From the NCBI RefSeq assembly GCF_006345805.1, contig NC_043007.1, forward strand, positions 38,936,001-39,000,000: 64,000 bases of DNA, in the 5' to 3' direction. A program made the position numbers and the translations under genes. Below, piece by piece: positions 1,404-61,304 of this stretch; within the stretch, counting starts at the first letter, position 1, and each line of letters starts with the position of its first letter. Under the pieces are notes generated by a model. That model was not told where the DNA came from. It saw nothing but the letters and a program-made list of their open reading frames with translations, and made no database searches. This DNA comes from Octopus sinensis (Eukaryota).

Positions 1404-2170
1404 ATGCTGGTTGCTTTTTACATGCCACTGGCACTAGGGCCAGTCAGGCTTAAATGGTGCTTTTTATATGCCAGTGATATGGGAGCCAGTCAGGCAGAAT
1501 TGACAATGACCACACTCGAATGGTGCTTTTTACATGCCACTGGCATGGGTGCCGGTCAGGTGGTACTGGCAATGACCATGCTTGAATGGTCTTTTTATGT
1601 GCCACCAGCATGGGAGCCAGTCAGGTGGTACTGGCAATGACCATGCTCAAATGGTGTTTTTACGTGCCACTGGCATGAGTGCCAGTCAGGCAGAACTGGC
1701 AATGACCATGCTCGAATGGTACTTTTTATGTGCCACTAGCACGGGAGCCAGTCAGGCACTACTGGCAATGACCACACTTGAATGGTGCTTTTTACGTGCC
1801 ACCGGCATGGGTGCCAATAAGGTGGTACTGGCAATGACCATGCTTAAATGGTGCTTTTTATGTGCCACTGGCATGGGTGCCAGTCAGGCGGTACTGGCAA
1901 TGACTACGCTTGAATGGTGCTTTTTACGTGCCACCAGCATGGGAGCCAGTCAGGTGGTACTAACAATGAACATGCTTGAATGGTCCTTTTTACGTGCCAC
2001 TGGCATGGGTGCCAGTCAGCCACTACTGGCAATGACCACGCTTGAATGGTGCTTTTTACGTGCCACCAGCTTGGGAGCCAGTCAGGCGCTACTGGCAATG
2101 ACCACACTTCATTGGTGTTTTTTATGTGCCACCGGCATGGGTGCCAGTCAGGTGGTACTGGCATTGGCCA
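1404..2170. repeat. 66-bp minisatellite (~12 units) forming the expanded end of a family-D SINE
   Basis: The gtgccac anchor recurs at about 1534, 1599, 1664, 1730, 1796, 1862, 1928, 1993, 2059, 2125. The same unit occurs 3-4 times in related elements at about 22440-22690 and 36060-36260. Confidence 0.9.
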
Positions 2171-2423
2171 CATCACATAGGTACATAATTTTAAAATGAA
2201 AACACAAGATAGTCTTGATTGGCCTTTCTTTGATTCATTAGTTTGCTTAGTTAGGACTGACCTAGGGTTAAACAGTTAAACAACAATAATTACAAAAGCA
2301 ATAGCATTTACTCAGTCCATTTTTCATATATTACTTTTTGATATTTGATTTTCAGTCAGAGGTTATAGGTATGTTCTCTCTGTCACTGTAGCTTTTACAG
2401 AAAAACAAGTCTGACTTGTTTAA

Positions 2424-2947: not shown

Positions 2948-3084
2948 GTGCCCTGGCATACCATGGTCACAGAGTTAAGATGTATGATAACAATACAGAA
3001 ACACTCAATAAAGCCTACTCCGTCATTGAAGAAGATAAAAACATGCTCCGACAAGAAGGACTGCTGCTACAAAAGAATTTCCTG
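2948..3084 (+). CDS. Gene 1 exon: Rossmann alphaA/beta2 region ([13 protein letters not shown]...)
   Basis: Acceptor tcttctttcag at 2946-2947, donor gtaatt at 3085. GHxVxxxD matches the beta2 strand of 3HCDH_N. Phase 1 in, phase 0 out. Confidence 0.9.
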
Positions 3085-4775: not shown

Positions 4776-5514
4776 GCCAGTTCAGATTGGAGCCTGGTGC
4801 AGCCATCTGGTTCGCCAGTCCTCAGTAAAATCGTCCAACCCATTCTAGCATGGAAAGTGGATGTTAAATGATGATGATGATGATGATATACACATACATA
4901 CATGGTTATGTGATTAAAAAGCTTGCCTTCCATCCATGTGGTCTTGAGTTCAGTTCCACTGCATGACACCTTGTGCAAGCATCTTCTACTGCAGCCTTGT
5001 GTAAACCAAAGCTTTGTGGTTGAATTTGGCTGACACAAACTGAAAGAAGCTCACCATGCATGTGTATATGTATGTGTGTGTGTGTGCATCTTTGTCTAAA
5101 TATTATTTGGTGATTGTAAATTATACAATGTTGATTGTATTGGCAAGCTGGTAGAAACGTTAGCACGTTGGGCAAAATGCTTAGCAGTATTTTGGCTGTC
5201 TTTATGTTCTGAGTTCAAATTTCACCGAGGTCGACTTTGCCTTTCATCCTTTCGGGGTTGATAAATTAAGTACCAGTTGTGTACTGGGGTCTATCTAGTT
5301 GACTGGCCCGCTCCCCCAAAATTTTGGGTCTTGTTGATTGTGTCCGATCTTCAGTGGAAACCATGCCCTCTCATAGAGAAATATTACTTTGCTTAGAAAC
5401 TAGTGTGGGGTGGTGACAAGAAGGGCATCAAGCTGTAGAAAATCTACTTCAGTAATTTCCATAAAGCATATGAAGCATGGAAAAGTAGATGTTAAATGAT
5501 GATGATGACGATGA

Positions 5515-5548
<34 letters not shown>

Positions 5549-5643
5549 GGTGATGATGATGATGGTGGTGGTGGTGGTGGTGGTGATGATGATGATAATG
5601 ATGATGGTGTTGGTGGTGGTGGTGTTGGTGGTTTTGGTAGTGG

Positions 5644-5685
<42 letters not shown>

Positions 5686-6148
5686 AAATATAGACATCAA
5701 TACTTGGAAGTTTAATATCTAAATTCTTAATCTTTATAATTTTGGCAGCAGGGAGTGCTAAATCCAAATTCTATTACAGACATAGCAGATCTTAGAAAAG
5801 TTTAAAGTGTACATTAATCTAAAAGTTCTGCCGATTCTTCATATCAAAGTGATGATTTATTCTTTCAGGGAACAATATATTACCTAAGTGGCCTCCAAGA
5901 AACAGTCAAAGATGCAGATTTTATATTCGAAGCAATTGTTGATGATCTTGAGATGAAACAAGACTTATTTCAAAGTAAGTACTAGACCAGTCAATACCTG
6001 GCCTAGGTTGACCATTCGTTTTGATTTTAAAAATAACCTCTGAAACTTAAGGGGTGGGTGTTTTCTAACGTGGTCCAAGGCTAACCAGGCCTTTCTGAGT
6101 AGATTTGGTACTTAGAAACTGATATGTGCATACGTGTGTGTGTGTGTG

Positions 6149-6183
<35 letters not shown>

Positions 6184-8354
6184 TAGTTTCCAGATGTTTC
6201 TTCAGGTTGGGTGGTATTGAACCTAATGCTCTGATGACAACAGGGCTAACCTTTATGTTTGACTCTTGTGGCTGCCACATTTTGGCAATCTAAATTTTCA
6301 GGTCTCCATATTTCTCAACCTTTTTCTCTTTCTTTTTCCTTTTTCTCTCTCTCTCTTCCTTCTTCTTCTTCTTCTTCTTCTTCTTCTTCTTCTCTTCTTC
6401 TTCTTCTTCTTCTCCTCCTCCTTCTCCTTCTTCTTCTTCTTCTTCTTCTTCTTCTTCTTCTTCTTGTTTTAATTTTTACTCCATGTATTCCTTATAACTT
6501 AGGTGCTTCACAAATGTGCAAGAATGATGCAGTGATTGCCACAAATTCACTCAAGTTCCACATCTCAGATATTGCCAAGAAATCTTCAAACAAAGAGGTA
6601 AGATGGCTGCAGTAATATCCAAAATATCTGAGGTAAATTATTGCTAGACTTCAACAAAGATTCTCGCAGACATCTTTAGATATGATTAATAAGTCTTATT
6701 CACCTTCCAATAACTTAAAGGTATGCCCCAACACATTTTCCCACCATCTTCTCTCCTTCTCATCTTTCTCTCTTTGCTTTTCTCATTTCTCTCTCCTGTC
6801 TTGTCTCTTTTCCCACAGCGGGGAGCCTTTACAGCCAGATACCTGCTTTGTCACTCTGTCATAGCTTAATGTGCCATCATGTGGCACAAAGTCACCTGTT
6901 CAAAACTGTTCCCCATTCAGTTGAGTGATCTTGTCTTGTGAGTTACTTAGTGACCTTGCTGATGCCGGTGCCATGTAAAATGCACCCGGAACACTCTGTA
7001 GAATGGTTAGCACTGGGAAGAGCATCTAACCAGAGAAACCTTGCCAAAGCAAGTAGTGGAGCTTGGCACAATCCTCTGGTTCACCAGCTCCTGTCAAACC
7101 ATCCAACCCATGCCAACATAAGAAATGGATATTAAATGGTGGTGGTGGTGATGATGATGATCACTAAATGAGCTTCACTATACAAGTGGTGTCATTCGTG
7201 TCCAATCTTCTGTGAAATGATGTTTGACACAAGGCCAAAAATTTGACGGGTGGAGACAAGTTGACTGCATTGACTCCTGTAATTGCCTGGTACTTTATTT
7301 TATTGACCTTGAAAAAATGAAAGCCAAAGTTGACCTCAGCAGGATTTGAACTCTTATAACATAGAGATCCAGGAAAAATGCCACTAAGTATTTTGTCTGA
7401 TGTGCTAATGATTCTGTCAGCTCACTGCCTTCTTTCATATTTTGGCTGAAGGCCAGTAATTTTAGGGGATAGGGGTTAGTTGATTACATTGTACTTGATG
7501 GTACAGTGTAATCACATCATCAACTAATTGATTGATATTTTGGTTTGCTGACCTCGAAAGAATGAACAAAAAAGATGACCCTGACAGAAACTGAAATGTG
7601 ATGACAAAGGGCTGTTACAAATACCATAAGGTATTTTGTTCTGGCTCCTTAAGTTCATATTCTGTTAGGGTCAACTTTGCCCTTCATCCCTCCTGAGTTG
7701 ATAAAATAAAGCACTAGTGAAGAACAACTAACTCTGGCCTTGTGCCTAATGGCGATGATGATGGTGGTGGTGGTGGTGGTGGTGGTGGTGGTGGTGAGGG
7801 GTGGTGGTGGCAGTGGCAATGCTCATAAAGAAAATAACAACAATTATGACTTCTTTTATTTGCCACAGGAACATTAGGCGAAGAGAATATTACATATCTA
7901 TTTATTTATCTCTCTATATATAAACGGCAGTTTGTCTGTATGTGTGTCTGTGTGTCTGTCAGGTTGTACCCTCACCCTGACCACGGCTTTCAACCGATTC
8001 TGATGAAACTTGACACACACATAGCCCAATGTCATAATTCAAAACTAACGCAGCGAAAATTTTGAAAAGTTCCCCCAGTTCTGAAAAGAATCGATAAATT
8101 TGACATGGGGTCGAGAATCTAAGCTTTTTATATGCAACACATTTTCTGTCTAGGGGACACAACTCGACCTTTTTATCGCCCAAAGGAACAGCTAGGAACA
8201 TCGTATACACAGAAGACATTGCAACCTACACATGCGCCTTCGTTCCCTAGAGGGAACGGACTAGATTGGGATTAGTCGTTGCCTACTAGGGGCTCTTACA
8301 TACCTGGGCAACGCCGGGCTATGCTGCTAGTCTACCTATATATCTGTGAATGTA

Positions 8355-8400
<46 letters not shown>

Positions 8401-9819
8401 TGTACACATACATGTCTATAATTGTATATGTGTGAGGGTGGATGTATTTGCTTACTTGTGTATCTATACGCACGCACACATACACACACATCTATATATG
8501 CATACATATATATCATATATGTATATATATATACATTTACATTAATAGTCTTTCAAATATGGCAATGTGGGAATTAAAAAAAGATCTTAATTTAATCAAT
8601 TAAAAAAAATTAAATCAGAATCTTATATGTATAAATGAAGATAATCATTTAATCTGATTTAAAATTAAACTCATCCAAAGAACAACTCATATACATAACT
8701 GACGTTTATTGGAAGACATAAATTGCAATGGAATGTTGACCAGATTAATATGTTCAGTAAATATCAACCTTTTGTTTATGTTTTCACGTATTTCTTTTAC
8801 TTTCTTTCACAGCAAATGATTGGTTTAAGGTTTTTATATCCTGTCTATTATATACCTGAAGTTGAGATCACTCTGAGCCAGCAGACTTCACCCGAAACTA
8901 TTGAAAAAGGTAAGGCCACAACAAGTTTCAGTCACGTTTCTAGCATAATTCTTTCTATTTTCAATAGCAGTCAATTGTTTGCTTCAAGAATGGACGAGGT
9001 ATTTCATTTCTATGCTTGTCACTTAACCTGTTGGTGACGTGTTGACAATGTAGCAATAAAAACTTCTTTGAAAAATAGGAAAAAAAAAATTATAATCTGT
9101 TGTGAATTCGTTACTATATATGTGTGGATAAAACCATATTCCCTCGGCAGTCTTCATTATGACCTCCACCTCTTCCACAACCTATTCCCTTCCCTCCCCT
9201 TCCCCTCCCTCTTTTCCTCCTCCTAGTCCCACCTCACCCCCATTCCACCTCAACTCTGCTTCCACTCTTGCCTCTCTCCCTCCTGCTTTTCCTCTTCATC
9301 CCCCCCCCCCCCGCTTCTCTCCCTCCTCCTTATCATTTCACAAATTTACTTTCCATGTTGGTATGGACTGGATGGGCCATCGAGTGCAAGTCAGTTCTTG
9401 TTTGGAAATACTGCTCGCCTATATGTGTCAGTGACCACATCTTGCTCATTACCTTTTATTTTGGCATGGTTCTATGGTTTCTACAATTGGATGCCCCTCC
9501 TATTAGTAACAATTTTACTAAGCATACTAAGATTTATTTTATCCTAGTACCAACATTGAAGAAGCTGTCATGTCCCCAAGATAAGACTGAACTAAAAGGG
9601 TCCTCTTAACTTTGTGTTGTTTCCACACATTTACCAATTGCCTTTATAGAGTGTACTCCATGTGTTTTATTGTGGCACAGCCCTAGTGAGTTTATCAAGT
9701 ATCAACAAGATAAAAAGCAAATCCACTGCATGGCACCTTGGGCAAGTGTCTTCTACTATAGTCTCGGGCCGACCAAAGTCTTGTGAGTGGATTTGGTAGA
9801 CGGAAACTGAAAGAAGCCC

Positions 9820-9869
<50 letters not shown>

Positions 9870-12826
9870 ATGGAGATGTACTTGCATAGCAAGTGACCTG
9901 ATCTGAGATCGTGTGCTGGAACAAAAACAATTGCAGCATGGAAGGTGTTTATAAGCCATTTAAGAAACACACAAAAACTGTTAGATTCACTTCAGCATTT
10001 AAATTTAATTTGCCAAAATATTTTTGTCGCTTTGAGACCACCACCTGTTCAGATGCAGCATGGAATTTTGTCAGTGAACAGGTCGCGGTCTCAAAGCGAC
10101 GAAAATATTTTGGCAAATTAAATTTAAATGTTGAAGTGAATTTAACGGTTTTTGTGTGTTTCTTAAATGGCTTACAAATACCTTCCATGCTGCAATTGTT
10201 TTTGTTCCAGCACACAATCTCAGATCAGGTCACTTGCTATGTGTATATACAACTGGCTTCTTTCAGTTTCCGTCTACCAAATCCACTCACAAGGCTTTGG
10301 TCACACCGAGGCTATAGTAGAAGATACTTGCCCAAGGTGCCACGCAGTGGGACTGAACCCGGAACCATGTGGTTTGTAAGCAAGCTACTTACCACACAGC
10401 CACTCCTACACCTATACACACACACACATATATATATACATACACACACTCATATATATACATATATATATATAAATATATGAAAGAATGGAGTTGAACG
10501 ACGAATTAACAAAATTCCTTTATTTTCGACATATGTTTCGAAGGCTGCATATTCCTAATTGCAAAGGAATAAGGAGTATATTATGCCGCTTTCTCATCAG
10601 GAAAAGCAAGGAACTTATGTCAACATCAAGATGCACAAAAAACTTTTAGATGACTGCTCACACGGAGCCCATAGTCGAAAATAAAGTAATTTTGTTAATT
10701 CGTCGTTCAACTCCATTCTTTCATATATTTATATTTAAAAAAAAAACATACAAATTTCCACACGAAAGCACGTAACTTCAAACGTGTCTTCTCTACTGTG
10801 AATTTGCTACCCAGGTATCAGTTAACCGAATTATCCATAAAAAGATAATTCATTCAACTACTCAAATATTCATATATATATATATACACTCATATATCTA
10901 TATGCATATGCACATGCACACTTATAAGCACTCATATATATACATACAAATACACACACACACACACATATATATATACATATAAAACATATAGAATGCT
11001 TATAACAAGTTATGTTTTCTTTGCATTTGACAGGAAGAAAGTTCTTGGAGAAAATGGGGAAGACATTATTCTTCAGATCTGGCAATGAACCATTGATTCT
11101 TAAGGAAGAGGAAAAGGAAACGAGAAAACAACGTAATTCATGATTTCAACATTCGAAACTATTGGCTGATTGCCTGATATGTTAGTGTTTTAGATGTAAT
11201 GCCTTTTATGGCATTTAGATATACATATTTCTTACAATGAGTTCATTAAGTTCAAGATCTACTGGTTTTGAGATTGTGTTTCCTCAGTTTGGGAGGTGGG
11301 GTGCTTAAATATGTACTGGTAGACTACTAATGTCAATGAAATTGGTCAATCACCTCACCCATTCAAAGAAGCCTTAAGATGCTGAACCTTATGAAGTAGA
11401 TGACAAGACCAAGCTATTTAGTGCATTACTGTACTTGGAAAGACATGCCCACCACAACAGAATTGAAATCCTAAAACCAGGGTGCCACATAAAATGCATT
11501 GGTGTGGGTGCTAGTGCCAAGTAAAAAGAACTAGTGATGCCACATGAAAAGCACCCAGTACATTCTGTGGTGTGGTTGGTATTCAGAAGGGCATCCAGCT
11601 GTAGCGGCCAAGCTAAAACAGACTATGGAACCTGGTGTGACCTCTGGCCACACCAGTTCCTGTCAAGCCTTCCAAACCATACCAGCATGGAAAATGGATG
11701 TTAAATGATGATGATGATGTTAGTATGTTAGAAATTGTCATCATAAAGGTGGCGAGCTGGCAGAAACATTAGCCTGCCGGGCGAAATGCTTAGTGGTATT
11801 TCGTCTGTTTTTACGTTCTGAGTTCAAATTCCACCAAGGTCGACTTTGCCTTTCATCCTTTTGGGGTTGAGAAATTAAGTAGTAGTTACACACTGGGGTC
11901 GATGTAATCGACTTAATCCCTCTGTCTGTCCTTGTTTGTCTCCTCTATGTCTAGCCCCCTGTGGGCAACAAAGAAATAAGAAATTGTCATCATTATCATC
12001 TTCATTGCCATTATCCTTGCTATTATTTTTCAGCTTTACGTTCTGAGTTCAAATGTTACTGAGGTCAATCTTGCCTTTTATCCGTTCAGGGTCAATAAAT
12101 TAAAATATTAGTCTAGTAGTAGCAGGGTCAGTCTAATTGACTAACATCCTTCTCTGAAGACTGCTGGCCTTATGCATAAAATAAAAACTGGTATCATAGC
12201 AGAATTATTAACATGTCTGACAAAACTGCTTAGCGACATTTCTTCTAGGTCCTTAATTCCTAAGTTCAAATTCTGCTGAGGTCAACTTTGCCTTTCATCT
12301 TTCCAGGGTCAATAAAATAAACTACCAGTCAAGTGCTGGTATTGATAGTAGTGACTAGCCATCTCTTCTCAAAACTGCTGGCCTTGTGCCAAGATTTAAA
12401 ACTATTCTTCTTTGGTCAATAAAATAAATACTTGTTGGGTGATGATGGGAGTTTGATGTAGTTGACTATCCTGTTTCCCTAATCTGTTTGGCCTGGCAGA
12501 ATCATTAGCATGCTAGACAAAATGCTCAACAGCAAGTACCAATCAAGTTCTGGGGTCGATGTAATTGACTTCCCTCTTTCCTGAAAAATTACCGGCCCTG
12601 TGCCAAAATTCAAAACAGAATCGTTAGCATGCTGGACGAAATGCTTAGTGGTATTTTGCCTATCATTATGTTCTGAGTTCAAATTCTGCCAAGGTTGGCT
12701 TTGCCTTTCATCCTTTTGGTGTTGACAGATTTTGTACCAGTGAAACATTGGGGTCGATGTAATCACGTAAACAACAAGTCCCCTCCTCCAAAATTTCAGG
12801 CCTTGGGCTTATAATAGAAAGGATTA

Positions 12827-12872
<46 letters not shown>

Positions 12873-13829
12873 GGAGTGGCTGCATGGTAAGTAGCTTGCT
12901 TACCAACCACATGGTTCCGGGTTCAGTCCTATTGCGTGGCACCTTAGCCGAGTGTCTTCTACTATAGCCTTGGGCTGACCAAAGCCTTGTGAGTGGATTT
13001 GGTAGACGAAAACTGAAAGAAGCCCGTCTTATATATATGTATATATATATGTATGTGTGTGTGTATATATCTGAGTTTGTCCACCTGACATTGCTTGACA
13101 ACTGATGCTGGTGTGTTACATCCCCGTATCTTAGCAGTTCGGCAAAAGAGACCAATAAACTAAGTACTAGGCTTACAAAGAATAAGTCCTGGAGACGATT
13201 TTCTCAACTAAAGGTGGTGCTCCAGCATGGCCACAGTCAAATGACTGAAACAAGTAAAAGAGTATTATTATTATTATTGAGTGAGAGAGCAGTTCATGCC
13301 ATCAAAGTGACACTGGGGTAAAATATACGAAGCCCAATATACCCATCATTACTCATCTGATAAGGGTACACCAGGCACATGCATCACAACCATATGTGCG
13401 CGACATGGTGATCTCATATCAAGGTAAACAGCACATGACCTTGCAGGTGGGGCCCAGTTAGAATTTTCTTCAGGTCGAGTAGCCCATCCCGCTCAAAAGG
13501 TCCCTGAATAAGGGTTGTTTAAGGATGTTGAAAGAACCACCCATGTTTCCAGAGGTGAATTATTCAAACCCCAAAGAATCCCTCTCAACACATGGCTATG
13601 ATGCTCCCCCACTACTTTTGCTTGTGATCAGAGATGCACATATCGTCAGCCACTAAGGGATATGTTGAACTGGTTAAGGTCAAACAACTGACAAGCAAAT
13701 CTGTGGTATTGAGCAGAATATTTGCTGTAGCCCATCTTTTATACCAAGACAAAACAATGTACATGATGACACTTCCAATCAGTTAAGATCAGAAGCCACG
13801 AGAGCCACTGCCTGGTACTGCATCAGGGC

Positions 13830-14132: not shown

Positions 14133-15260
14133 CATTATTATTATTATTGCTTTCTTCACAGTTCGTCTAGAACAGATCAAAAATTCATTTGGAATGACAC
14201 ACTTATTTAAGAAAACAGTTCCAAAACTTTCCCATGATGGTAATGAAGCTCCTTCACAAGATGAAGCTGAGGGTAAGGCACTGAAGAAGGGATTTTATTT
14301 ATATATCTATTTATTTTGTTGCCTTTTTTTTTTTTTACTTGTTTCAGTCATTTTTGTGTGGCCATGTTGAGGCATTAGTTTTAATGAATAATAATAATTC
14401 CACACTGCAAAGATCACATCACAGAAGATTGAAGAGCTTTATTGGGAAAAAATTCCTCATCCACCTTATTCTCCCAACCTTGCTCCTTCAGACTACCATT
14501 TGTTTCGTAGTTTACAGAATCAATTGGGGGGGGGGGGACATAACTTTTGACAAGCCAGGAGGAGGTCGAAATTGAGATTTCAGAGTTCTTCGCTTTGAAA
14601 CCAAAAGGGTTTTACATTGATGGGATTAAAAAGCTTGTAAATACATGAAAGGAAGTCATAGATAATCAGGGAAAGTACATTGATGATTAAATTTCAATTA
14701 AATATAACATTTGATCACTTGTTTTCATTATTCAAAATTCAGACAGAACTTATGGAATGACCTGATATTTCATCAAACAAATGGGGATGAAAGGCAAAGT
14801 TGACCTGGGTGGCAGTTAATCTGGGAACCTGAAGGCACATAGCTTAGTGGTTAGTGTATCCAGCTTATGATTGCAAAGTTGAGAGTTCAGTTTCTGGTGT
14901 TGCATTGTGTCTTTGAGCAAGGCTCTTTATTTCACATTGCTCTAGTCCACTCAGCTGGCAAAAATGAGCAGTACCTGTGATTCAAAGGGCCAGCCTTGTT
15001 ATATTCTGTGTCATGCTGAATCCCTCTGAGTACTACATTAAGCTTATGTGTATCTGTGGAGTGCTCAGCCATTTGCATGTTAATTTTATGGATAAACTGT
15101 TTCATTGATTGGATCAGTTTGAGCCCTTGTCATTATAACTGACAGAGCACCATTTTTTTTTTGTTTGTTGGTTAGTTTCTCAACATCCCTAGTGGAAATT
15201 TTGTCCTTTAATTGCAAGGATAATCAAGCTTAATTACAGCTCACTATATTTCATGAGACT

Positions 15261-15658: not shown

Positions 15659-16891
15659 CACATATGTATATATACATATATACATACATATGTATATGTG
15701 TGTGTCTTTGTGTGTAAATGACACGCATTGTCTTCCAAAGATAGAAATTAAGTCCCTGGCTATATTCTTGGTTACATTTATGTTGAATTGCTCTCAGTAT
15801 TAAAACTGACAGCTACGCCACTTAACTAAAGATGGGATGTATTATATAGCTGCTGTGCACTTGAAGACCTTCTGTCCATCTGAAAACCCAGAGCCTACTA
15901 ATATTGATGCAATAAACCTTACATAGTACCTGGCTATTGATGATTGTAAATGAAGTCTGGATAGGGTGTTTTCCCTTACACCACAGTAGTCCAGCAAACA
16001 ACAGCAATATTCCTGTTCTGCTACATATTTGATAACCTGACCTGTTCTTGATCATTGATAATTGGCTTTGCCGATGCTTTGCTGAATACTCAATTCCCTG
16101 ACAATTGCCTCAATGAGCAAATATGTACAATATGACCTCTCCATGGTTCTTTGAGCCGTTACCAATCTCTGTTCTTCTCTCTTTGTTGTAGCCCATGTTT
16201 CACTACCATATAACATTGCAGGTAGAACTGTGCTATTGATGAGGTTGGCGCAGGTGGTCCTGTTCAACCTTTTCTTGAGCACATCCCTTATGACAATAAA
16301 CGTCTTCCATCCGGCCCTTACTCACATATACATTAATTTCTTATGAGTTATAGAAACAGTATTGGTTCAAAATAGAAATCTGTGTATCATACTTAGAGCA
16401 GATACATTGTTGAAAGCCTGACAAACTGAAATATTTATCTGAAGATAACAACTATTATAGATATATAGTGTTAGAAACTGCAGAAATATATGAGTAGTAG
16501 ATAAAAATTATACAGCAGCTGTTGTGACAGACACTCACACATAACTGTGTGTGTGTGTTGACTCTATAACATCAATGTACAAATGATGAAACATCCTCAG
16601 TGTCGTTATTACCTTTTGTGTTAATGTTCTTATTTTCATTGTTCTCATCAATGTTGTTATCACATGAAATTTAAGGCTCTCTTAAATTTGTTTTCTCCCA
16701 CAGGTATCCCATGCATTAGCAGCGAACAAGACTGTGCCATCTGTATGGCCAACACTCGGGACTGTCTGCTCTGTCCTTGTCATCACATGGTCACTTGTTA
16801 TGTTTGCTCAAACATGCTTCTCAACAAGCAGGATGGATGTCCAATATGTCGAAAAGACATCACAGAAATTGTCAAAGTGTATCATTCATAG
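2948..16891 (+). CDS. Multi-exon gene (5'-partial): 3-hydroxyacyl-CoA dehydrogenase-like NAD-binding domain fused to a C-terminal C3HC4 RING finger; join(2948..3084,5869..5974,6503..6597,8813..8909,11034..11132,14162..14272,16704..16891)
   Basis: Seven GT-AG-bounded exons (833 nt) splice in one frame to 276 aa plus stop: (G)[276 protein letters not shown]. Every junction phase is compatible. Confidence 0.88.
3463..3908. repeat. 134-bp tandem repeat, ~3.3 copies
   Basis: taccaaccactttac starts at 3463, 3597, 3731, with a degenerate fourth start at 3860. Confidence 0.9.
3909..4313 (-). mobile_element. Internally deleted hAT transposon
   Basis: Imperfect TIRs CAGGGCTGGATT / CAGCACTGGATT, 8-bp TSD cccccagc / gccccagc (7/8). 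Minus-strand peptide [33 protein letters not shown] resembles the C-terminal tail of hAT transposases. Confidence 0.85.
5495..5685. repeat. Compound (GAT)/(GGT)/(AGT) microsatellite
   Basis: Directly visible. Confidence 0.95.
5869..5974 (+). CDS. Gene 1 exon: [20 protein letters not shown] motif
   Basis: Acceptor ttattctttcag, donor gtaagt. Matches the family motif D(AC)D(LF)xxEAxxEx(L)xxKxxxF of 3-hydroxyacyl/3-hydroxybutyryl-CoA dehydrogenases. Confidence 0.93.
6355..6465. repeat. (CTT)n microsatellite just upstream of the 6503 acceptor
   Basis: Directly visible. Confidence 0.95.
6503..6597 (+). CDS. Gene 1 exon: [17 protein letters not shown] motif
   Basis: Acceptor ataacttag, donor gtaaga. 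Aligns with the family motif I(FL)ASNTSSLxITxIA. Confidence 0.9.
7909..8330 (+). mobile_element. Non-autonomous Helitron-like element
   Basis: 5' TC(TC)TATATATAAA start after A, gtctgt microsatellite near the 5' end, subterminal GC hairpin cctgggcaacgccggg (8303-8318), 3' CTAG followed by T. Confidence 0.7.
8813..8909 (+). CDS. Gene 1 exon: [17 protein letters not shown] motif
   Basis: Long pyrimidine tract plus cacag acceptor, donor gtaagg. Aligns with GLHFFNPVxxMxLVEV...TSxET. Confidence 0.92.
9885..10241. mobile_element. Foldback/MITE-like palindrome, 167-bp arms with 23-bp spacer
   Basis: 9885-10051 is the near-perfect reverse complement of 10075-10241. Confidence 0.9.
10471..10733. repeat. 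Inverted repeat, 60-bp arms, 143-bp spacer (Penelope-end-like sequence)
   Basis: tataaatatatgaaagaatggagttgaacgacgaattaacaaaatt.ctttattttcgac pairs with 10674-10733. Confidence 0.85.
11034..11132 (+). CDS. Gene 1 exon: end of Rossmann domain (FLEKMGKT) and start of helical linker
   Basis: Acceptor ttgcatttgacag, donor gtaatt. 99 nt, phase 1-1. FxxxxGK matches the end of 3HCDH_N. Confidence 0.85.
12873..13263 (+). mobile_element. tRNA-derived SINE family A (internal TA/TG microsatellite)
   Basis: A-box-like tggctgtgtgg, B box ggttcagtcc, tail aatgactgaaacaagtaaaagag. Other full copies at about 18826, 38308, 44791, 50066, 60956, 62616. Confidence 0.85.
13279..13831. mobile_element. ~550-bp interspersed element flanked on both sides by (ATT)n, copy 1
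   Basis: Colinear and highly similar to 31746-32301, with the same ends (gagtgagagagcag...catcagggcat). Confidence 0.85.
14162..14272 (+). CDS. Gene 1 exon: linker
   Basis: Acceptor gctttcttcacag, donor gtaagg. 111 nt, phase 1-1, open frame joining the flanking exons. Confidence 0.78.
14405..14766 (+). mobile_element. Mariner transposon 3' fragment with right TIR
   Basis: Encodes [28 protein letters not shown] (YSPDLAPSDY motif) ...[12 protein letters not shown]. Ends in aacttatggaatgacctgata, a mariner-type TIR ending in TA. Confidence 0.9.
16100..16325 (-). mobile_element. RTE-clade LINE fragment
   Basis: [16 protein letters not shown]...[34 protein letters not shown], the post-RT region typical of RTE ORFs. 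Confidence 0.85.
16704..16891 (+). CDS. Gene 1 terminal exon: RING-HC (C3HC4) zinc finger
   Basis: Acceptor ttttctccccacag-type tract. C-x2-C-x11-C-x-H-x3-C-x2-C-x10-C-x2-C, then a stop 13 residues later, as in C-terminal RING-HC E3 ligases (MGRN1/Neuralized/Mind-bomb style). Confidence 0.93.
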
Positions 16892-26917: not shown

Positions 26918-27161
26918 CTCACACATTTACTTGCTCATACACATCATCACCTTTGTCAGCGTTGGCATCGTGGGCGGCAGTGGCTGCAATGACGGTGGCA
27001 GTGTAGCTGTGCAATAAGAAGTTTGCATCCCAACCAAGTGGTTCTCAGTTCAGTTTCACAGTGTGGAGACCTTGGGCAAATATCTTCTGTTATAGCCTTG
27101 GGCTGACCAAAGCCTTGCAAACAGATTTCATAGATGAAAACTCTAAGAAACCTGTTGTATA

Positions 27162-27218
<57 letters not shown>

Positions 27219-27498
27219 CGCAGGAGTTGCTGTGTGGTAAGCAGCTTGCTTCCCAGCCACATAGTTCCGGGTTCAGTCCCACTGCGTGGCACCTTGGGCA
27301 AGTGTCTTCTACTATAGCCTCGGGCTGACCAAAACCTTGTGAGTGGATTTAGTAGACAGAAACTGAAAGAAGCCAGTCATATATACTACCTGCATCAACT
27401 TGTTATAAAAGCAGATTGTAATTTTACCTTGTACTTATTCTTAGAGCAAGTTTTCAAGAGTGCAGTTTGATTTTAATAGTTACTTTTTCAAAGCTATA

Positions 27499-28510
27499 AT
27501 AGAAGTGACAAAAGAGCATATTTGGCATATTTTGCTTTATGAGTTCAATAAAGACAAAAGCGCAATGGAAAGTGCAAATATTATTAATGCAGTATATGGG
27601 GGTTGGACAATAAACGTAAGCCAGTGTCAACGGTGGTTCCAGAAATTCCAAGCTGGAAATTACAGCCTAGGAGAAGAGTTTCGTCCTGGAAGATCTGTAG
27701 AGCTCAATGAGGACGTCCTGCAAACCCTGGTGGAACAAAATCCCATAGTAACTGTTGAGGAACTAGCAACAACCTTTCATCAACACCTGCGTGCCATCAG
27801 AATAGACAGCAAATTGGATCAATGGGTTCCTCACAAACTTTCTGAGTCTAATCATAGTAGAGAGTGAATATGTGCTCTTCTTTGCTGTCATGTCTCACTA
27901 ATGAACCTTTTTTGGATGGAACAGTGACTAATAATGAGAAATGGGTTCTCTATAGAAATGTCAAACACTGAAGACTGCTTACTGAAAGAAGAAACACCAG
28001 CACTCCAAGCTAAAGAAGGTTTTCATCCATGTAAGGTGTTGTTATCTTTTTGGTGGGATATGACAGGTTTAACCCACTTTGAACTTTTAGACCTAAACCA
28101 AAATGCAACAAAGAAGATCTACTGTGAGCAACTTGAGTGGCTTAAGTCAGTGCTAGAAGAAAAACGACCGTCTTTGGTTTCAAGATGAAAAGTGTTCTTC
28201 CATCAGGATAATTTCAGCCACATTCAGTGAGGATGACATTCCAAAGGCTGGAGCAGTTTGAATGGAAAACGATGTCCCAACCACCATATTCAATGGACAT
28301 TGCCCCATCTGATTATCATTTATTCCGCAGGCTTCAAAATCATTTGGACAGAAAAATCATTTGAATGGAATTCTGTAGATGAAGTCAGAACAGTATTGGA
28401 AGAGTATTTTTTTGTCACAGACAAGTGAATTTTGGAACAGGGGCCTTGCAAATCTACCAGATAGATAGAAGAGCATTGTTGTAAATAAAGGAAAGTATAT
28501 TTTAGATTAA
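27499..28510 (+). pseudogene. Degenerate near-full-length mariner transposase
   Basis: HTH region (KEHIWHILLYEF...QRWFQKF), [42 protein letters not shown] motifs, broken by stops and frameshifts. Confidence 0.92.
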
Positions 28511-43983: not shown

Positions 43984-45975
43984 CACTAATTTGGTATAAT
44001 TAACACTAATTAGGTATAATGTATGCTGTGTTCTATTTAATGAATTCTTGTGATAGCATGTTTATCCCTTTTATTACGAAATAAATAGCAATTTATTATT
44101 ATTATTTTATTTGTTTCAGTCAGTGGACTACGGCCATGCTGGGGCCCCGCTTAGAAGAGTTTAGTCAATCAAATTGATCCCCACTACTTTTTCTTAAGTC
44201 TGATATTTATTCTCTCGTTCTCTTATACGGAAATGCTAAGTGACTAAATTACAAGGATGTAAACAAACAAACACTGGCTGTCAAGTGGTGGTGGGACGAA
44301 CACAGATGTGCACGCGCGCATACATACACACATACACACACACATACACACACATTAGCGACAGAAAAAGTGTTATTTTAAAATAGCATTCTGTACATCA
44401 TATTGTAACAGATATACTGTACAAAGACTCGAACCTGCGATTTTTGTCTTAAGAAAGCATCTCGTTGAGATGTGTGGTTCAAAAACCACTGAAATTTATC
44501 TGTAGCAGACGAAAAGTGTGTAGCAACATTATTGAAATTGCTAAAAACGTATTTCTGCTTTCTTGAGCGTCGTCAACTAGCAAGCATCCACTCGCAACTG
44601 CATGCTAAAAACAAATCTAGTTTTCAATGATATAAGAAAACAATGATTACTGATAAATCACTGATGTCGCTATTAGTCAGCAAGCTGAATAAAAATTCGT
44701 AATTAGCGACGAAAGTAGTATTAGTTTGTCTTTACGAGCTGTTTTCTCGAGACGAATACCGCGTACAGCAATTACAAGAACGGATAGGCGCAGGAGTGGC
44801 TGTGTGGTAAGTAGCTTGTTTACCAACCACATGGTTCCGGGTTCAGTCCCACTGCGTGGCACCTTGGGCAAGTGTCTTCTACTATAGCCTCGGGCCGACC
44901 AAAGCCTTGTGAGTGGATTTGGTAGACGGAAACTGAAAGAAGCCCGTCGTATATATGTATATATATATATGTATGTGTGTGTGTTTGTGTGTCTGTGTTT
45001 GTCCCCTAGCATTGCTTGACAACCGATGCTGGTGAGTTTATGTCCCCGTTACTTAGCGGTTCGGCAAAAGAGACCGATAGAATAAGTACTGGGCTTACAA
45101 AAGAATAAGTTCCGGGGTCGAGTGGCTCGATTAAAGGCGGTGCTCCAGCATGGCCGCAGTCAAATGACTGAAACAAGTAAAAGAGTAAAAGAGGATAAAC
45201 AAGAAGAATATTATCTATTAAACAAGAAATGAGAAGGGAAATTACAAACGTTAGAATAATACTTATTACTTGGTTTAGTTTACCGTAGTTTACTTTGTGA
45301 AGAAGCTCAATCAAATTAAAAGATTATACAATGGTGTCCAATAACTTGAAGACACTAATATATAATCTACTTTCAGAAAATAATGGCAGAATAGAAAGGC
45401 TTTTAGATGTCAAAGAAATGTCTTCCAATTAATTAGTCTTGCAAGAAATGTAGGAGAGACTCTATTAATTACCTCCGTTAATATACATACATATTATGCA
45501 AGTATGTATGTATGTATGTATGTATGTATGTATGTATGTATGTATGTATGTATGTATGTATGTATGTATGTATGTATGTATGTCATTATTCAGTTTATTT
45601 GAAGATTTCTTGCCAATAGAGAAATAACCGGTTTCTAACCTAGATCCAAGGCTCCTTCATTGGAATTTCAACATCAATACAGGGTATATTTGTATGTATG
45701 TATGTATGTATGTATGTATGTATGTATGCATGTATGTATGTATGTATGTACGTGCAGATTTGTATGTTTTATGTATGTATTCTCATGCATATAGTTGCAT
45801 ATCTAGACATGCTCATATATATTTAAATGATAAACTTCAGGAAAGTTTTACAGATTTATACCGTTCCAGTGATGGACTGGATCAGTAGTCTTCGAATTAG
45901 CTTTCTCCTTTCTGGTTTCGAGAAGTCTAATTTCTCAAGATTGGTATCTCTTTTGTGTGTGTGTGTGTGTTTGTA

Positions 45976-49900: not shown

Positions 49901-50767
49901 TTTTGAACTTTCTATCATATAATAATTTGCAAGACGTTACTCTCAACTTAACCAAACCATTGTTATTCTTATCGCAAACTTGATATAACTGTTTTTAAAA
50001 AACTAACCGTTCAAAAATATTTTTATCAATCTGATGAAAATTATTTAAAAATTTTCTAATAGGTGCAGGAGTGGCTGTGTGGTAAGTAGCTTGCTTGCCA
50101 ACCACATGGTTCCGGGTTCAGTCCTGTTGCGTGGCACCTTGGGCAAGTGTCTTCTACTATAGCCTCGGGCCAACCAAAGCCTTGTAAGCGGCCTTGGTAG
50201 AAGGAAACTGAAAGAAGCTCGTCTTATATATATATGTGTGTGTGTGCCTTTGTGTCTGTGTTTGTACCCCCAACGTTGCTTGACAACCGATACTGGTGTG
50301 TTTACGCCCCCGTAACTTAACGGTTCGGCAAAAGCACACGGATAGAATAAGTACTAGGCTTACAAAGAATAAGTCCTAGAGTCTATTTGCTTGACTAAAG
50401 GTGGTGCTTCAGCATGGCCGCAGTCGAATGACTGAAACAAGTAAAAGAATAAAAGAAAAATATTTGAGCCAATAAGCAAAATTTTCACCGATTCGTCCTT
50501 GTAATTCAATGAAGTCCTCTCTCGAAATGGTTTCAATGAGAAAATTAAGAACAATGTAGCTTTCACATAAAGTGTTAGTCACAGAATTAAATTGATACAA
50601 CCCTTCCTTTAATTTTACGGTTGCTACCTCCCAATATCTAAAATTTTCGTCGAGTCATTGCAGAAACATTTGCCGTCACAACACAACTACTTCAATAAAA
50701 ACACCATCAAAATATCTTATTCACTAAACCTAAATATGCTTAATCACACGCCTCATTTTATCTTTCT

Positions 50768-57975: not shown

Positions 57976-60851
57976 TTAAAAGGGGTCAAACGATGACGTG
58001 TCATGACTATCCCAGCTAGAGTCTGTTGATGTTACGGTATCGTTATCATGAGTGTCATGATTAGAAGTGTTGTATGAGATGGTAATTGGTCGCGGTTCAA
58101 ACTTCGCTGGAGTAGTAATATTTAGAATTTCTAACTTGGCTGGGTTTGTTTTAGTCTCGTCTGACGACACTGAGAAATTTGAATCAGAAAATGAAGGACG
58201 AGATAAAGTCTCAGAGGCTGGGGATAAGTCTTTTCCGTTAAATTTCAAATGCTTATCGGAAGCAGCTTTCAAGTTATCTTCATTGATTTCCGACCACGAA
58301 GAAACAATACGGCTGGTGTCAACAGTTTGAGGTGAGGAAGCATCCTCTCGATGGTCTTCTCCATCTAAATGATTTAGTGTTGTATCGTTATGTGCTTCTA
58401 GGGAAGTTGGCAGTAATTCGTCGTTGCCAGTGGATATTTTTAAAGAAATCGGGTTTGTCAGCGTACTTTTTGGAGACAAGCTTTGTGTGTCAGTTGATTG
58501 TTCGTCTTCCGTCATTTCAAAAAACGCCTCGTCTTTCTTGTTGTGTTCTTCATCACTGTCGGTTGATATATGTATGTCACGAGGAGAAATGTTGCGATCA
58601 GATAAATCTGGATTGTTCTCTTGTGAACTATCCAAGCTTATATCTGAATGATTCCTGTGAGTGCTGGACACGTCAGCTGGAGACTCAGTATGCAAAATAC
58701 CTTGCACTTTTTTTATTGCTTTACTGAAAAATCCATCCTGCTGTTTTCCTTTGGTCTCTGAACTATTAGGTGAATTAAAGTCTGTATTGCCTGCTTCTGT
58801 TGTGGTTTCTGAAACATTAGGTTTACTATTGGACGTCATGTCTTCTTTGATGAAACTGTTTATATTGGAGTCGCTGGATTCGTTCAGAGTAAATTTTGTA
58901 TCGGTTTCAATCGTCATGTCATGGTTTGAAAATTTTAATGCTGAATCTGTTTTAATAGAATCATTGTCTGAGTGATATGGTGAGGCTTCAGAAGTATGAA
59001 ATTTCTTAGCAGCTAATTTGGGAGAATATGAATCGTCAGTCTCGCTCATTAAGGAGGAATTGTCATCTAGGCGTAAAAAGCCTGTTATAAATGGTGAAGT
59101 AAGCATTGGGTTTCGTGTCTTATAACCTGTGTTTTCACTTTCATTAATTTCTACCCCAAATTTTTTATCTTCATCTTTAACATGCTCATTTTTCTTATTT
59201 CCAAAAGTATCAAAATTCATATCAGTTGAAGATGAACTGCCTGTGCTCTCATCCAGTTTCAAACTTGTGACTTTGGTGGGTTTTTTTATAAGCGACTGTA
59301 TACTAAACTCATCGTCACCAAACAATGGCATAGGAAAGCTAGTGTCTACATTGTTTTCTGAATCATGGTTTCGGTCCCAAATCTTATTCTTAAAATTGTC
59401 GTCTGTCGATAATAAACCTTTAGCCCTTTTTACTACAGAATCATCTTCATTAGTTTCCAGTTCATCCGAAGATAGATGGAGGTCAACGTTATTTTGAAGA
59501 TCTCTACTGGGTAGATTTATCACGTCATGATCTTTTGTTAGTTCCATTCTGGTGGGAATGTCAGGTGGATCTAACTGTATGATCGCAGTTTCGTCATGGC
59601 TTGGTATTTTCATCATCTCAGAATCAGAGGCATCGCTGTCACTGTCTGCAATATATTTGCTAAAACTATTTTCTACGACATCCTCTTTTCTAACGAATTT
59701 TACAGGCATTGTAAATAAGTTTTCTGTAGAAGATTTAAAATGTGCCATATCTGTTTTAGGTTCTTGTATTTCATTCAAATCGGTAAAATTACCGTCAAAG
59801 GAAGGGATTTCTGAGGGATTTTTAAAAGGGGACTTGAGAGAAACATCCTTTTTAATTGGTGTGATCTCTGCTTCCAGAGATGGGTTTTCCTTAAAAACAG
59901 TCTCAGAATTTAAACTAAAAGGCTTAACATCAGTAAAATCGTTACCCACTGATAGATTATCAGGTATAATTCCATTTGTGATATTTTTGTTTGGTATGTC
60001 CTTTCTGATGTTTGGATTTTGAGACATAGCAGTCTGATTTGTTGCCACAGAGATTGTGTCTTCGATAGGTGTTTTATTACTAGACAGTTTCTCCGGATTG
60101 AAGCGTGGTATATTACTCTTGTCATTTATTTTATCATATAATTCAGAAAAATGAGCTGAATAACGTATACTTCTTTCTAGTTCTGCAAATTCACTTTCTG
60201 AATTTAGAGAGCGTTTTCTTTCGTTATCTGGGACTTCCAATTCTAGTCCCGTTGATTTTTCTTCTGCTTCGTGTTTCAAATCTAAAAATTCTTTATCATA
60301 CTTGGAAAACTGCAAATCCATTTTGTCATCGATATTTGAAATATCTTCTCTGGATCTTAACCTGCCGTCTACGTTTCTATCGGCTTGTGAAGCCAGAGAA
60401 GGAAAGCGTAGGTTTTGTGAATTTACCAGATTGTCTTTTTCTGGCAGAATTTTTTTCTCTTTATCAAATTTGCCATCCCTTTCTTTATCCGAATGGACTA
60501 CTACTTCTAATGTACCCGGGCTTAGTGATATATCACTCTCAGAATTGAAGAGACTGCTATTTGTAGAACCACGCATTTTGACTATAGATGGACTTTTTCC
60601 TCGAACTTTCAATTCGTTGTAGGGTACTTTTGGTGGTGGTTCCTTAACAATTTCGTAGAGATCATTTGCTGAGTGACTACGAAGAACAGGATGCAAAATG
60701 GGAGCCTTCGTAATGATTGGTCTATTTGGTACTGCCTTCTGTTTTTCAACAGTGACTTTAACTGGGTAAGGAGAGGCATATCCTAAGATGGCGAGAGCGT
60801 CCTTGAAAACAATATTTTTGAATGATATTGAAACTTCCTTGATTAAGTCAC
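57976..60851 (-). CDS. Gene 2 giant terminal exon: C-terminal part of periaxin/AHNAK-like PDZ domain plus ~920-aa acidic Ser/Asp/Glu-rich disordered tail
   Basis: Acceptor ttttatttcag at 60852-60853, phase 1 (G|GT) matching the 63078 donor. GDLIKEVSISFKNIVFKDALAILGYASPYPVKVTVEK resembles periaxin [33 protein letters not shown]. Uninterrupted 2876-nt frame ending in TAA. The two exons give 1006 aa. Confidence 0.9.
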
Positions 60852-61304
60852 CTGAAATAAAATAAAACAAGATTAGATATACATATAGTTTATCATTATA
60901 TAATAATATTACTGTAAAATAAATTTTAAATTAAATTGTAAACATCACAATTATAGGAGTGGCTGTGTGGTAAGTAGCTTGTTTACCAACCACGTGGTTC
61001 CGGGTTCAGTCCCACTGCGTTGCACCTTGGGCAAGCCTCGGGCCGACCAAAGCCTTGTGAGTAGATTTGGTAGACGGAAACTGAAAGAAGCCCGTCGTAT
61101 ATATATATGCGTGTGTGTGTTTGTGTGTTTGTCAACCGATGCTGGTGTGTTTATGTCCCCATCACTTAGCAGTTCTGCAAAAGAGACCGATAGAATAAGT
61201 ACTGGGCTTACAAAAGAATAAGTCCCGGGGTCGAGTTGCTCGATTAAAGGCGGTACTCCAGCATGGCCGCAGTCAAATGACTGAAACAAGTAAAAGAGTA
61301 AAGA

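Follow-up and report, generated by a model that had tools for sequence, protein, structure and literature searches.

In this study we describe a gene of Octopus sinensis (assembly GCF_006345805.1) that lies in a stretch of 64,000 nucleotides on contig NC_043007.1 (positions 38,936,001 to 39,000,000, forward strand; "the window" in the following) and is predicted to encode not a dead enzyme on its own but an E3 ubiquitin ligase that carries a pseudo-dehydrogenase module. On balance we lean towards a RING E3 ligase with a non-catalytic Rossmann module, to which nicotinamide adenine dinucleotide, NAD(H), would bind as a ligand for regulation or targeting. The original prediction, made from three exons at 5869-8909, had proposed a dead dehydrogenase akin to human 3-hydroxyacyl-CoA dehydrogenase (HADH) that may still bind a dinucleotide. 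Its pseudoenzyme part is upheld by fixed catalytic losses, purifying selection and preserved NAD contacts. The picture of a HADH-like, stand-alone protein is not supported by our data, since the domain 3HCDH_C is missing, Asn208 is lost and the C-terminal half consists of a linker and a RING finger.

The three exons encode the middle of an HADH-type NAD-binding domain. Their joint product of 99 amino acids (aa) matched the Pfam family 3HCDH_N (E=7e-24) and, when compared with solved HADH, Hbd and FadB enzymes, scored best against the HADH of C. elegans (4j0e, E=1e-13). Residues were assigned using a HMMER and a MAFFT alignment, and HADH positions are numbered here as in the mature enzyme; the human sequence was checked against PDB entry 1f0y_A and matched it in register, with 301 of 302 positions the same. 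In HADH, His158 takes the proton, Glu170 anchors His158, and Asn208 together with Met26 sandwiches the reacting groups (PMC10988713); Ser137 is essential, and the helical C-domain forms the dimer (PMC6333283). The catalytic His158-Glu170 dyad is broken, with the His lost and the Glu present, so that the enzyme signature HxFxPxxxMxLxE (PMC11476959) is altered in exon 5 at its His and retained at its Glu. At the position of Asn208 the window protein carries Lys, and most relatives carry Ser or Thr. The NAD contacts of a solved Hbd are made by the GxGxxG backbone together with the residues Asp31, Glu90, Lys95, Asn115 and Ser117 (PMC11476959), and four of these five hydrogen-bonding side chains (Asp31, Glu90, Lys95, Asn115) have retained counterparts in the octopus protein; the one that is lost is the catalytic Ser117. 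The Rossmann domain has lost every residue of the chemistry (His158, Ser137, Asn208, Asn161) and with them the whole C-terminal helical domain.

The replacements of His158, Asn161 and Ser137 that the original prediction had read by eye were recovered in both alignments, and the same holds for the retained Glu170, Lys115 and the acid (Asp) at position 110; the codons of all of them were located (Table 1). The acidic residue of strand beta2 (in KMYD) is likewise retained as claimed, but its codon belongs to exon 2 and lies beyond the 5869-8909 interval to which it had been assigned.

The complete gene comprises eight exons as judged by its orthologue, seven of which are located inside the window on the forward strand between 2948 and 16891; the three exons mentioned above are exons 3 to 5. 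Exons 6 to 8 were located using tblastn with the open reading frame (ORF) of an oyster transcript contig (L001), in which an ORF for a RING finger follows 30 nt downstream of the Rossmann ORF in a compatible frame. All seven exons show canonical AG/GT borders and consistent phases, and the reading frame stays open until the stop codon. Joined together they form an open frame of 277 aa, corresponding to a full protein of about 293 aa with two domains. This window protein shares 98% identity with its counterpart in Octopus bimaculoides, 85% with that of Argonauta and 38-62% with relatives ranging from a chiton to Trichoplax. The octopus gene is intact.

Exon 1, which should carry the GxGxxG motif, had been placed outside the window by the original prediction, and this was borne out. 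None of the forward frames of positions 1-2950 encodes GxGxxG, and tblastn with the canonical and with the alternative N terminus of O. bimaculoides as queries did not find the exon in the window. At the O. bimaculoides locus (L002) the canonical exon 1 MKVAVLGCGILGVKIAG is located at 12783-12833, 22.8 kb upstream of the exon that matches window positions 2948-3084, and contains GCGILG as its GxGxxG; the motif is also conserved throughout the family. The annotated O. bimaculoides "isoform X1" (P0012) uses an alternative exon 1 MFKNSIYKHYYGLLSPKKQLL at L002:10001-10066, 2.8 kb upstream of the canonical one, and lacks strand beta1 and GxGxxG. This isoform, if real, would be unable to bind a dinucleotide.

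The domain architecture is clear from Pfam. The window protein matched 3HCDH_N (E=2e-33, profile positions 18-173 of 180) and zf-C3HC4_3 (PF13920, E=5.7e-13), and no match to 3HCDH_C (PF00725) was obtained; in the Argonauta orthologue the Rossmann domain (PF02737) was matched with E=1e-40. An AlphaFold2 model was built for the complete Argonauta orthologue using an alignment of 72 family sequences. Its mean predicted local distance difference test score (pLDDT) is 87, with both domains above 90: a Rossmann domain with one long helix (residues 1-205) and a RING (residues 238-293) are modelled with confidence, and the segment between them (residues 206-237) is disordered. Foldseek searches against the PDB returned solely NAD-binding domains as top matches (Hbd, HADH, MFE1, CRYL1, FadB), the best of them, from Hbd, HADH and MFE1, with a root-mean-square deviation of 1.7-2.7 A over about 180 residues (e.g. 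9fbd, 1.7 A over 182 columns). The Rossmann fold extends in full as far as its last strand, where GKTLFF aligns with GKHPVS of HADH by sequence and by secondary structure. The helix that bears Asn208 in the enzymes is still present, with Lys, Ser or Thr at that position, and beyond it the helical domain of the enzymes is absent. For the region past about residue 171, Pfam coordinates and the secondary structure of the model were used, as MAFFT with the options --add --keeplength dropped HADH residues and misaligned there. A disordered linker of about 30 residues and the RING replace the C-terminal substrate-binding and dimerisation domain. Within the linker (residues 213-221 of P0013) a short conserved motif, (V/I)PxLxHxGN, was observed, reading VPKLSHDGN in exon 7 of the window; P215 is invariant and L217 nearly so among the 72 sequences, and the motif is absent from the protist members inspected. 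A function in docking, or one resembling that of a degron, is possible.

The RING finger bears the sequence marks of a competent E3 domain. Its eight zinc ligands (C242, C245, C257, H259, C263, C266, C277, C280) are invariant in the 72-sequence alignment, as is the Arg of CPICR directly after the last Cys. The closest solved RINGs in the PDB are those of MDM4/MDM2, MUL1, MEX3C, MGRN1 and the IAPs. A basic residue after the last RING Cys is the linchpin that activates E2~ubiquitin, and C-terminal RINGs of the MDM2, MUL1 and IAP kind are mostly dimers whose last residues activate E2~ubiquitin. The tail of the window protein is hydrophobic and ends in VKVYHS; the family ends in (R/K)V(Y/F)HS, and rotifer members in KIFMS. 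Judged by sequence, the protein is a member of the zf-C3HC4_3 RING E3s with a seemingly competent E3 domain, and we regard it as a likely RING E3 ubiquitin ligase. By analogy with its closest solved relatives, dimerisation via the RING is probable.

A full-length search retrieved 127 relatives; 117 relatives were aligned to HADH, and a curated alignment comprised 72 sequences. Almost all of the 127 are about 290 aa long and combine PF02737 with PF13920. They stem from cephalopods, a chiton, bivalves, gastropods, annelids, a brachiopod, nemerteans, a priapulid, spiders, mites, rotifers, hemichordates, echinoderms, corals, Nematostella and Trichoplax. Across the 117 aligned relatives, His158 is Arg in every single sequence, Ser137 is Leu, Met or Ile and never Ser, and Asn161 is Tyr, Phe or His, while Glu170 and Lys115 are invariant and position 110 is always Asp or Glu. 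GxGxxG is kept wherever the N terminus is complete, and its three glycines are invariant in the curated alignment. Further invariant columns of that alignment are the equivalents of E106 and K115, then Arg135, Leu137, Pro139, Val140, Glu145 and Glu147, and FxRxG. In the wider collection two RING-bearing sequences deviate from Arg at position 158, namely P0152 (Gln) and the fragment P0211 (Trp).

Between the two octopus species the shared coding sequence differs by 24 synonymous and 6 non-synonymous changes. The ratio of non-synonymous to synonymous substitution rates (dN/dS) is 0.058 for the whole (dS 0.157), 0.016 for the Rossmann part, 0.19 for the linker and 0.057 for the RING. The Rossmann domain is under strong purifying selection, and the substitutions are fixed across the family and not a product of decay. 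Both checks named in the original prediction, an orthologue alignment and a low dN/dS, consequently came out in favour of a pseudoenzyme: Arg is fixed at the His158 site, Ser137 is consistently replaced, and selection is strong. The refuting outcome it had named, orthologues with His and Ser still in place, was not observed. Homology to enzymes, missing catalytic residues, fixation of their loss and purifying selection together point to a pseudoenzyme.

The Asp of strand beta2 (Asp45), a position that normally selects NAD over NADP, is present throughout the 117 relatives with the exception of one bivalve group. In this subgroup (Ruditapes, Mercenaria, Mya, Mactra, Dreissena; P0037, P0042, P0043, P0058, P0059, P0062, P0066, P0073) the position is Ser and the protein ends in RVYSG instead of RVYHS. 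The Ser may reflect a changed ligand preference.

The association of the altered Rossmann domain with an E3 domain extends well beyond these animals. A profile search of 1.84 billion cluster representatives yielded 105 clusters at E≤1e-30, and 271 collected sequences were aligned to the family profile and tallied by the residue in the His158 column and by the E3 domain. Arg together with a RING was found in 164 of the 271. Another 39 carry Arg with no aligned RING and are fragments, truncated models or variants; 48 have His and no RING and are ordinary enzymes with NTS/H/N/E, often tandem bacterial forms. The combination of His with a RING occurs in none of the 271. Exact-sequence look-up identified Arg-type members in the sponge Sycon, the jellyfish Sanderia (a divergent paralogue), the rotifer Seison and the millipede Chamberlinius, and among protists in Acanthamoeba castellanii (XP_004356735), the prasinophyte Pterosperma and the dictyochophyte Octactis. 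Pfam further revealed variant architectures of the Arg-type domain: 3HCDH_N with a U-box, a kinase with 3HCDH_N and RING, a tandem duplication of 3HCDH_N plus RING, and PX with 3HCDH_N and RING, the last in a millipede sequence that may stem from a gene model fused in error (variant sequences: P0231/P0277, P0200/P0234, P0129, P0156). The Arg-type domain thus travels with an E3 domain over much of eukaryote diversity, even where the type of E3 changes; the octopus gene belongs to an old and widespread family in which the partner is a RING or, in one lineage, a U-box.

Vertebrate, insect, nematode, fungal and land-plant members were absent from the named matches of the full-length search, with no dedicated genome search made, which is suggestive of, and not proof for, the absence of the family from these groups. 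In the databases the architecture is already visible as automatic predictions, under names such as "probable 3-hydroxybutyryl-CoA dehydrogenase", "lambda-crystallin homolog" or "L-carnitine dehydrogenase". Our literature search found no paper that describes or tests this architecture, or a Rossmann-type NADH-sensing E3; the family has apparently never been studied.

Table 1. Exons, diagnostic codons and other features of the window (positions counted from its first nucleotide; HADH residues numbered as in the mature enzyme).
Feature	Position	Strand	Content	Basis or remark
Exon 2 (first exon inside the window)	2948..3084	+	(G)+45 aa: end of helix 1, beta2 with its acid, helix 2	tblastn with family members; splice sites; 97% identical to O. 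bimaculoides L002:35617-35753
Asp45 kept as Asp	2986-2988	+	beta2 acid, in KMYD	exon 2
Exon 3	5869..5974	+	35 aa; equivalents of E106, E110, K115 are Glu, Asp, Lys	
Glu110 to Asp	5941-5943	+	acid kept	
Lys115 kept as Lys	5956-5958	+		
Exon 4	6503..6597	+	(S)+31 aa; N135-T136-S137 motif is N-S-L, catalytic Ser gone	
Ser137 to Leu	6550-6552	+	codon CTC	
Exon 5	8813..8909	+	32 aa; His158 equivalent Arg, Asn161 equivalent Tyr, Glu170 present	
His158 to Arg	8828-8830	+	codon AGG	
Asn161 to Tyr	8837-8839	+		
Glu170 kept as Glu	8864-8866	+	codon GAG	
Exon 6	11034..11132	+	(G)+32 aa: last strand of the Rossmann sheet, start of the single long helix	tblastn with oyster transcript ORF; splice sites, phase; AlphaFold2 secondary structure
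Exon 7	14162..14272	+	(L)+36 aa: end of helix and disordered linker with motif (V/I)PxLxHxGN	tblastn; splice sites, phase; 72-sequence alignment; AlphaFold2 pLDDT <50 at residues 206-237
Exon 8 (last)	16704..16891	+	(G)+61 aa and stop TAG (16889-16891); C3HC4 RING at extreme C terminus	Pfam zf-C3HC4_3 E=5.7e-13; PDB RING matches; ligands invariant in 72 sequences
Tandem array	1448-2171		66-bp unit, 11 copies, 83% match	intron upstream of exon 2; yields a spurious 205-aa ORF
Tri-/dinucleotide microsatellites	e.g. 5500-5690, 6130-6185, 6330-6465		dense, intronic	
Interspersed element copies	~10266-10364, 12915-13013, 27058-27138, 44832-44933, 50107-50208		similar translations	weak tblastn matches
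Mariner/Mos1-type transposase fragment	27460-27867	+	presumably a decayed transposon	Pfam HTH_48 E=1e-16
964-aa ORF	57976-60870	-	Ser/Asn/Asp-rich	no Pfam domain

The window is animal genomic DNA of about 37% GC with long, microsatellite-rich introns. Because its length is far beyond chance, the 964-aa ORF on the reverse strand probably represents a large exon from a neighbouring gene whose product would be disordered. No tRNA genes were detected in the window using ARAGORN, though positions 481-560 look tRNA-like by eye.

With respect to function, we consider it rather probable that the Rossmann module binds a dinucleotide, and because of the beta2 Asp this would probably be NAD(H). The module would no longer oxidise a substrate and would still hold NAD+ or NADH, and its occupancy or redox state would tune the activity of the ligase or its choice of substrate; the invariant Arg-Glu pair, at the former His-Glu site beside the nicotinamide, may serve to read either the ligand or a partner. 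That the ligand or its redox state regulates the ligase in this way is a more tentative step, which we would not put above a working idea. A number of points weigh against the ligand-binding interpretation. We infer NAD binding from conserved positions, and for O. sinensis the GxGxxG from the sister species O. bimaculoides. The needs of folding can be enough to preserve invariant glycines and buried acids. Arg for His and a bulky Leu or Met for Ser137 adjoin the nicotinamide site and could occlude or alter the ligand. Finally, the beta2 Ser of the bivalve subgroup argues against one universal ligand.

The strongest competitor, in our judgement clearly less probable, is a RING E3 whose Rossmann domain serves as a scaffold, i.e. 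as a protein-interaction or substrate-receptor module without any nucleotide and with motifs kept for folding. Many pseudoenzymes do serve as scaffolds, the former active site is packed with Arg135, Leu114 and Tyr/Phe138, and the beta2 Asp is replaced by Ser, Leu or Ala in some members. Invariance, however, falls on the ligand contacts (the GxGxxG glycines, Lys115, the acid at 110 and mostly N135) across animals, Amoebozoa, green algae and stramenopiles, with surrounding surface positions varying freely, and this exceeds the usual upkeep of a fold.

It is improbable, in turn, that the Rossmann domain is a catalyst of new chemistry, for example one that consumes NAD to modify ubiquitin or a substrate in concert with the E2~ubiquitin that the RING recruits. 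Such a scenario would be in line with the NAD-type domain being obligatorily paired with an E3 domain, the U-box swap included, and with the invariant Arg-Glu pair at the old catalytic centre; the RING-DTC pair of Deltex would be a functional parallel. Rossmann dehydrogenase folds, on the other hand, are not known to cleave the nicotinamide-ribose bond, and a second lobe that could provide a substrate cleft is missing.

Even less can be said for a stand-alone dead HADH paralogue, perhaps binding a dinucleotide and devoid of other activity. The catalytic substitutions and the retained NAD contacts on which it builds are real, and Rossmann-only models of 163-165 aa do exist in Biomphalaria, Dimorphilus and the oyster transcript (P0002, P0004, P0005). 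A homologue search with the 99-aa fragment returned only models of 69-174 aa, all sharing GLRFL(Y/F)PVYYIPEVE. Yet all short models end at the exon 5/6 boundary through reading into the intron, Biomphalaria has a 296-aa form as well, the window gene continues in frame to linker and RING, 3HCDH_C is missing, and full-length two-domain proteins are the norm in more than 100 species. A truncated Rossmann-only protein was therefore rejected on the compatible frame of the RING ORF in L001 and on the full-length search. Such short models recur in a snail, an annelid and an oyster. At the exon 5/6 junction of the oyster contig (L001:553-580) 28 extra nucleotides with GT…AG ends and an in-frame stop were found, too short for a normal intron; they could be an assembly artefact, a retained fragment or a poison exon.

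The automatic database names speak for an active 3-hydroxybutyryl-CoA or 3-hydroxyacyl-CoA dehydrogenase; this is hardly credible for a protein that lacks the proton-abstracting His, Asn208, the essential Ser and the entire domain for CoA binding and dimerisation (for their roles see PMC10988713, PMC6333283 and PMC11476959). That the substitutions in this octopus stem from lineage-specific decay, from a pseudogene or from an error of sequencing has next to no probability, because orthologues lack His and Ser at the same sites, the ORF is intact, splice sites are canonical and dN/dS is 0.058. The decay, pseudogene and active-enzyme readings were thus rejected on alignments, selection and Pfam.

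The RING ligase with a dinucleotide-binding Rossmann module, which we favour, has partial counterparts in several known systems. With HADH, Hbd, MFE1, FadB and CRYL1 it shares the N-terminal Rossmann NAD fold, the E110/K115 pair, N135, Glu170 and the beta2 Asp, and, to judge by the O. bimaculoides orthologue and the family, GxGxxG as well. In contrast to these enzymes it has Arg for His158, Leu, Met or Ile for Ser137, Tyr, Phe or His for Asn161, no Asn208 and an attached RING; it also has no 3HCDH_C, and hence neither an acyl-CoA cleft nor an enzyme-type dimer. The octopus protein is a homologue of 3-hydroxyacyl-CoA dehydrogenases (EC 1.1.1.35/1.1.1.157) that should not be named one, since three defining features tested (the catalytic dyad, Ser137 with Asn208, and the C-domain) are not preserved in it. 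Like MDM2/MDMX, MUL1, MEX3C, MGRN1 and XIAP/cIAP it ends in a C3HC4 RING that has the linchpin Arg of CPxCR and a hydrophobic tail; unlike in those ligases the N-terminal partner is a pseudo-dehydrogenase and not a BIR, p53-binding, KH or transmembrane module.

As for the Rossmann module, CtBP, NmrA/HSCARG and bacterial Rex are dinucleotide-sensing regulators without redox turnover. The pseudo-oxidoreductase GFOD1 keeps NAD binding (PMC11612644). As in these four, the octopus protein would have kept a Rossmann domain as a ligand module with catalysis lost or irrelevant, binding being suggested here by the conserved contacts. The four belong to other fold families (D-2-hydroxyacid dehydrogenase, SDR, Gfo/Idh/MocA). 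None of them is known to be joined covalently to an E3 domain. RNF146 and Deltex are RING E3s that ADP-ribose or NAD regulates or that make use of it, and the E3 ligase MARCHF6 is another case, reported to sense NADPH (PMC9583509). What the octopus protein would have in common with these three is the concept of a RING E3 set by a direct ligand of the nicotinamide/adenine dinucleotide type. Their modules, by contrast, are a C-terminal regulatory region, a WWE and a DTC domain, none is a Rossmann fold, and they are vertebrate and experimentally supported. Precedents therefore exist for the concept and not for this fold.

Our results have a practical side. Hundreds of genomes mislabel this gene as an enzyme of beta-oxidation or of the butyrate pathway, and metabolic reconstructions that count it are wrong (molluscs, echinoderms, cnidarians, protists). 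The protein is small (about 290 aa) and soluble-looking. That no vertebrate, insect, nematode, fungal or land-plant member was seen among the matches would explain why the family has been overlooked.

A pairing that is kept through a U-box swap and the addition of a kinase or PX domain is strong comparative evidence for a conserved link between a small-molecule module and ubiquitination. It is conceivable, though we hold it with considerable doubt, that the octopus protein is a founding member of an ancient eukaryotic class, redox-gated ubiquitin ligases, in which a dead Rossmann domain would read NAD+/NADH or a related dinucleotide and switch the RING or U-box. If true, such a system would date far back in eukaryote history and, to go by the matches, would have been lost from vertebrates, insects and nematodes, and these ligases would couple the redox or metabolic state directly to ubiquitination.

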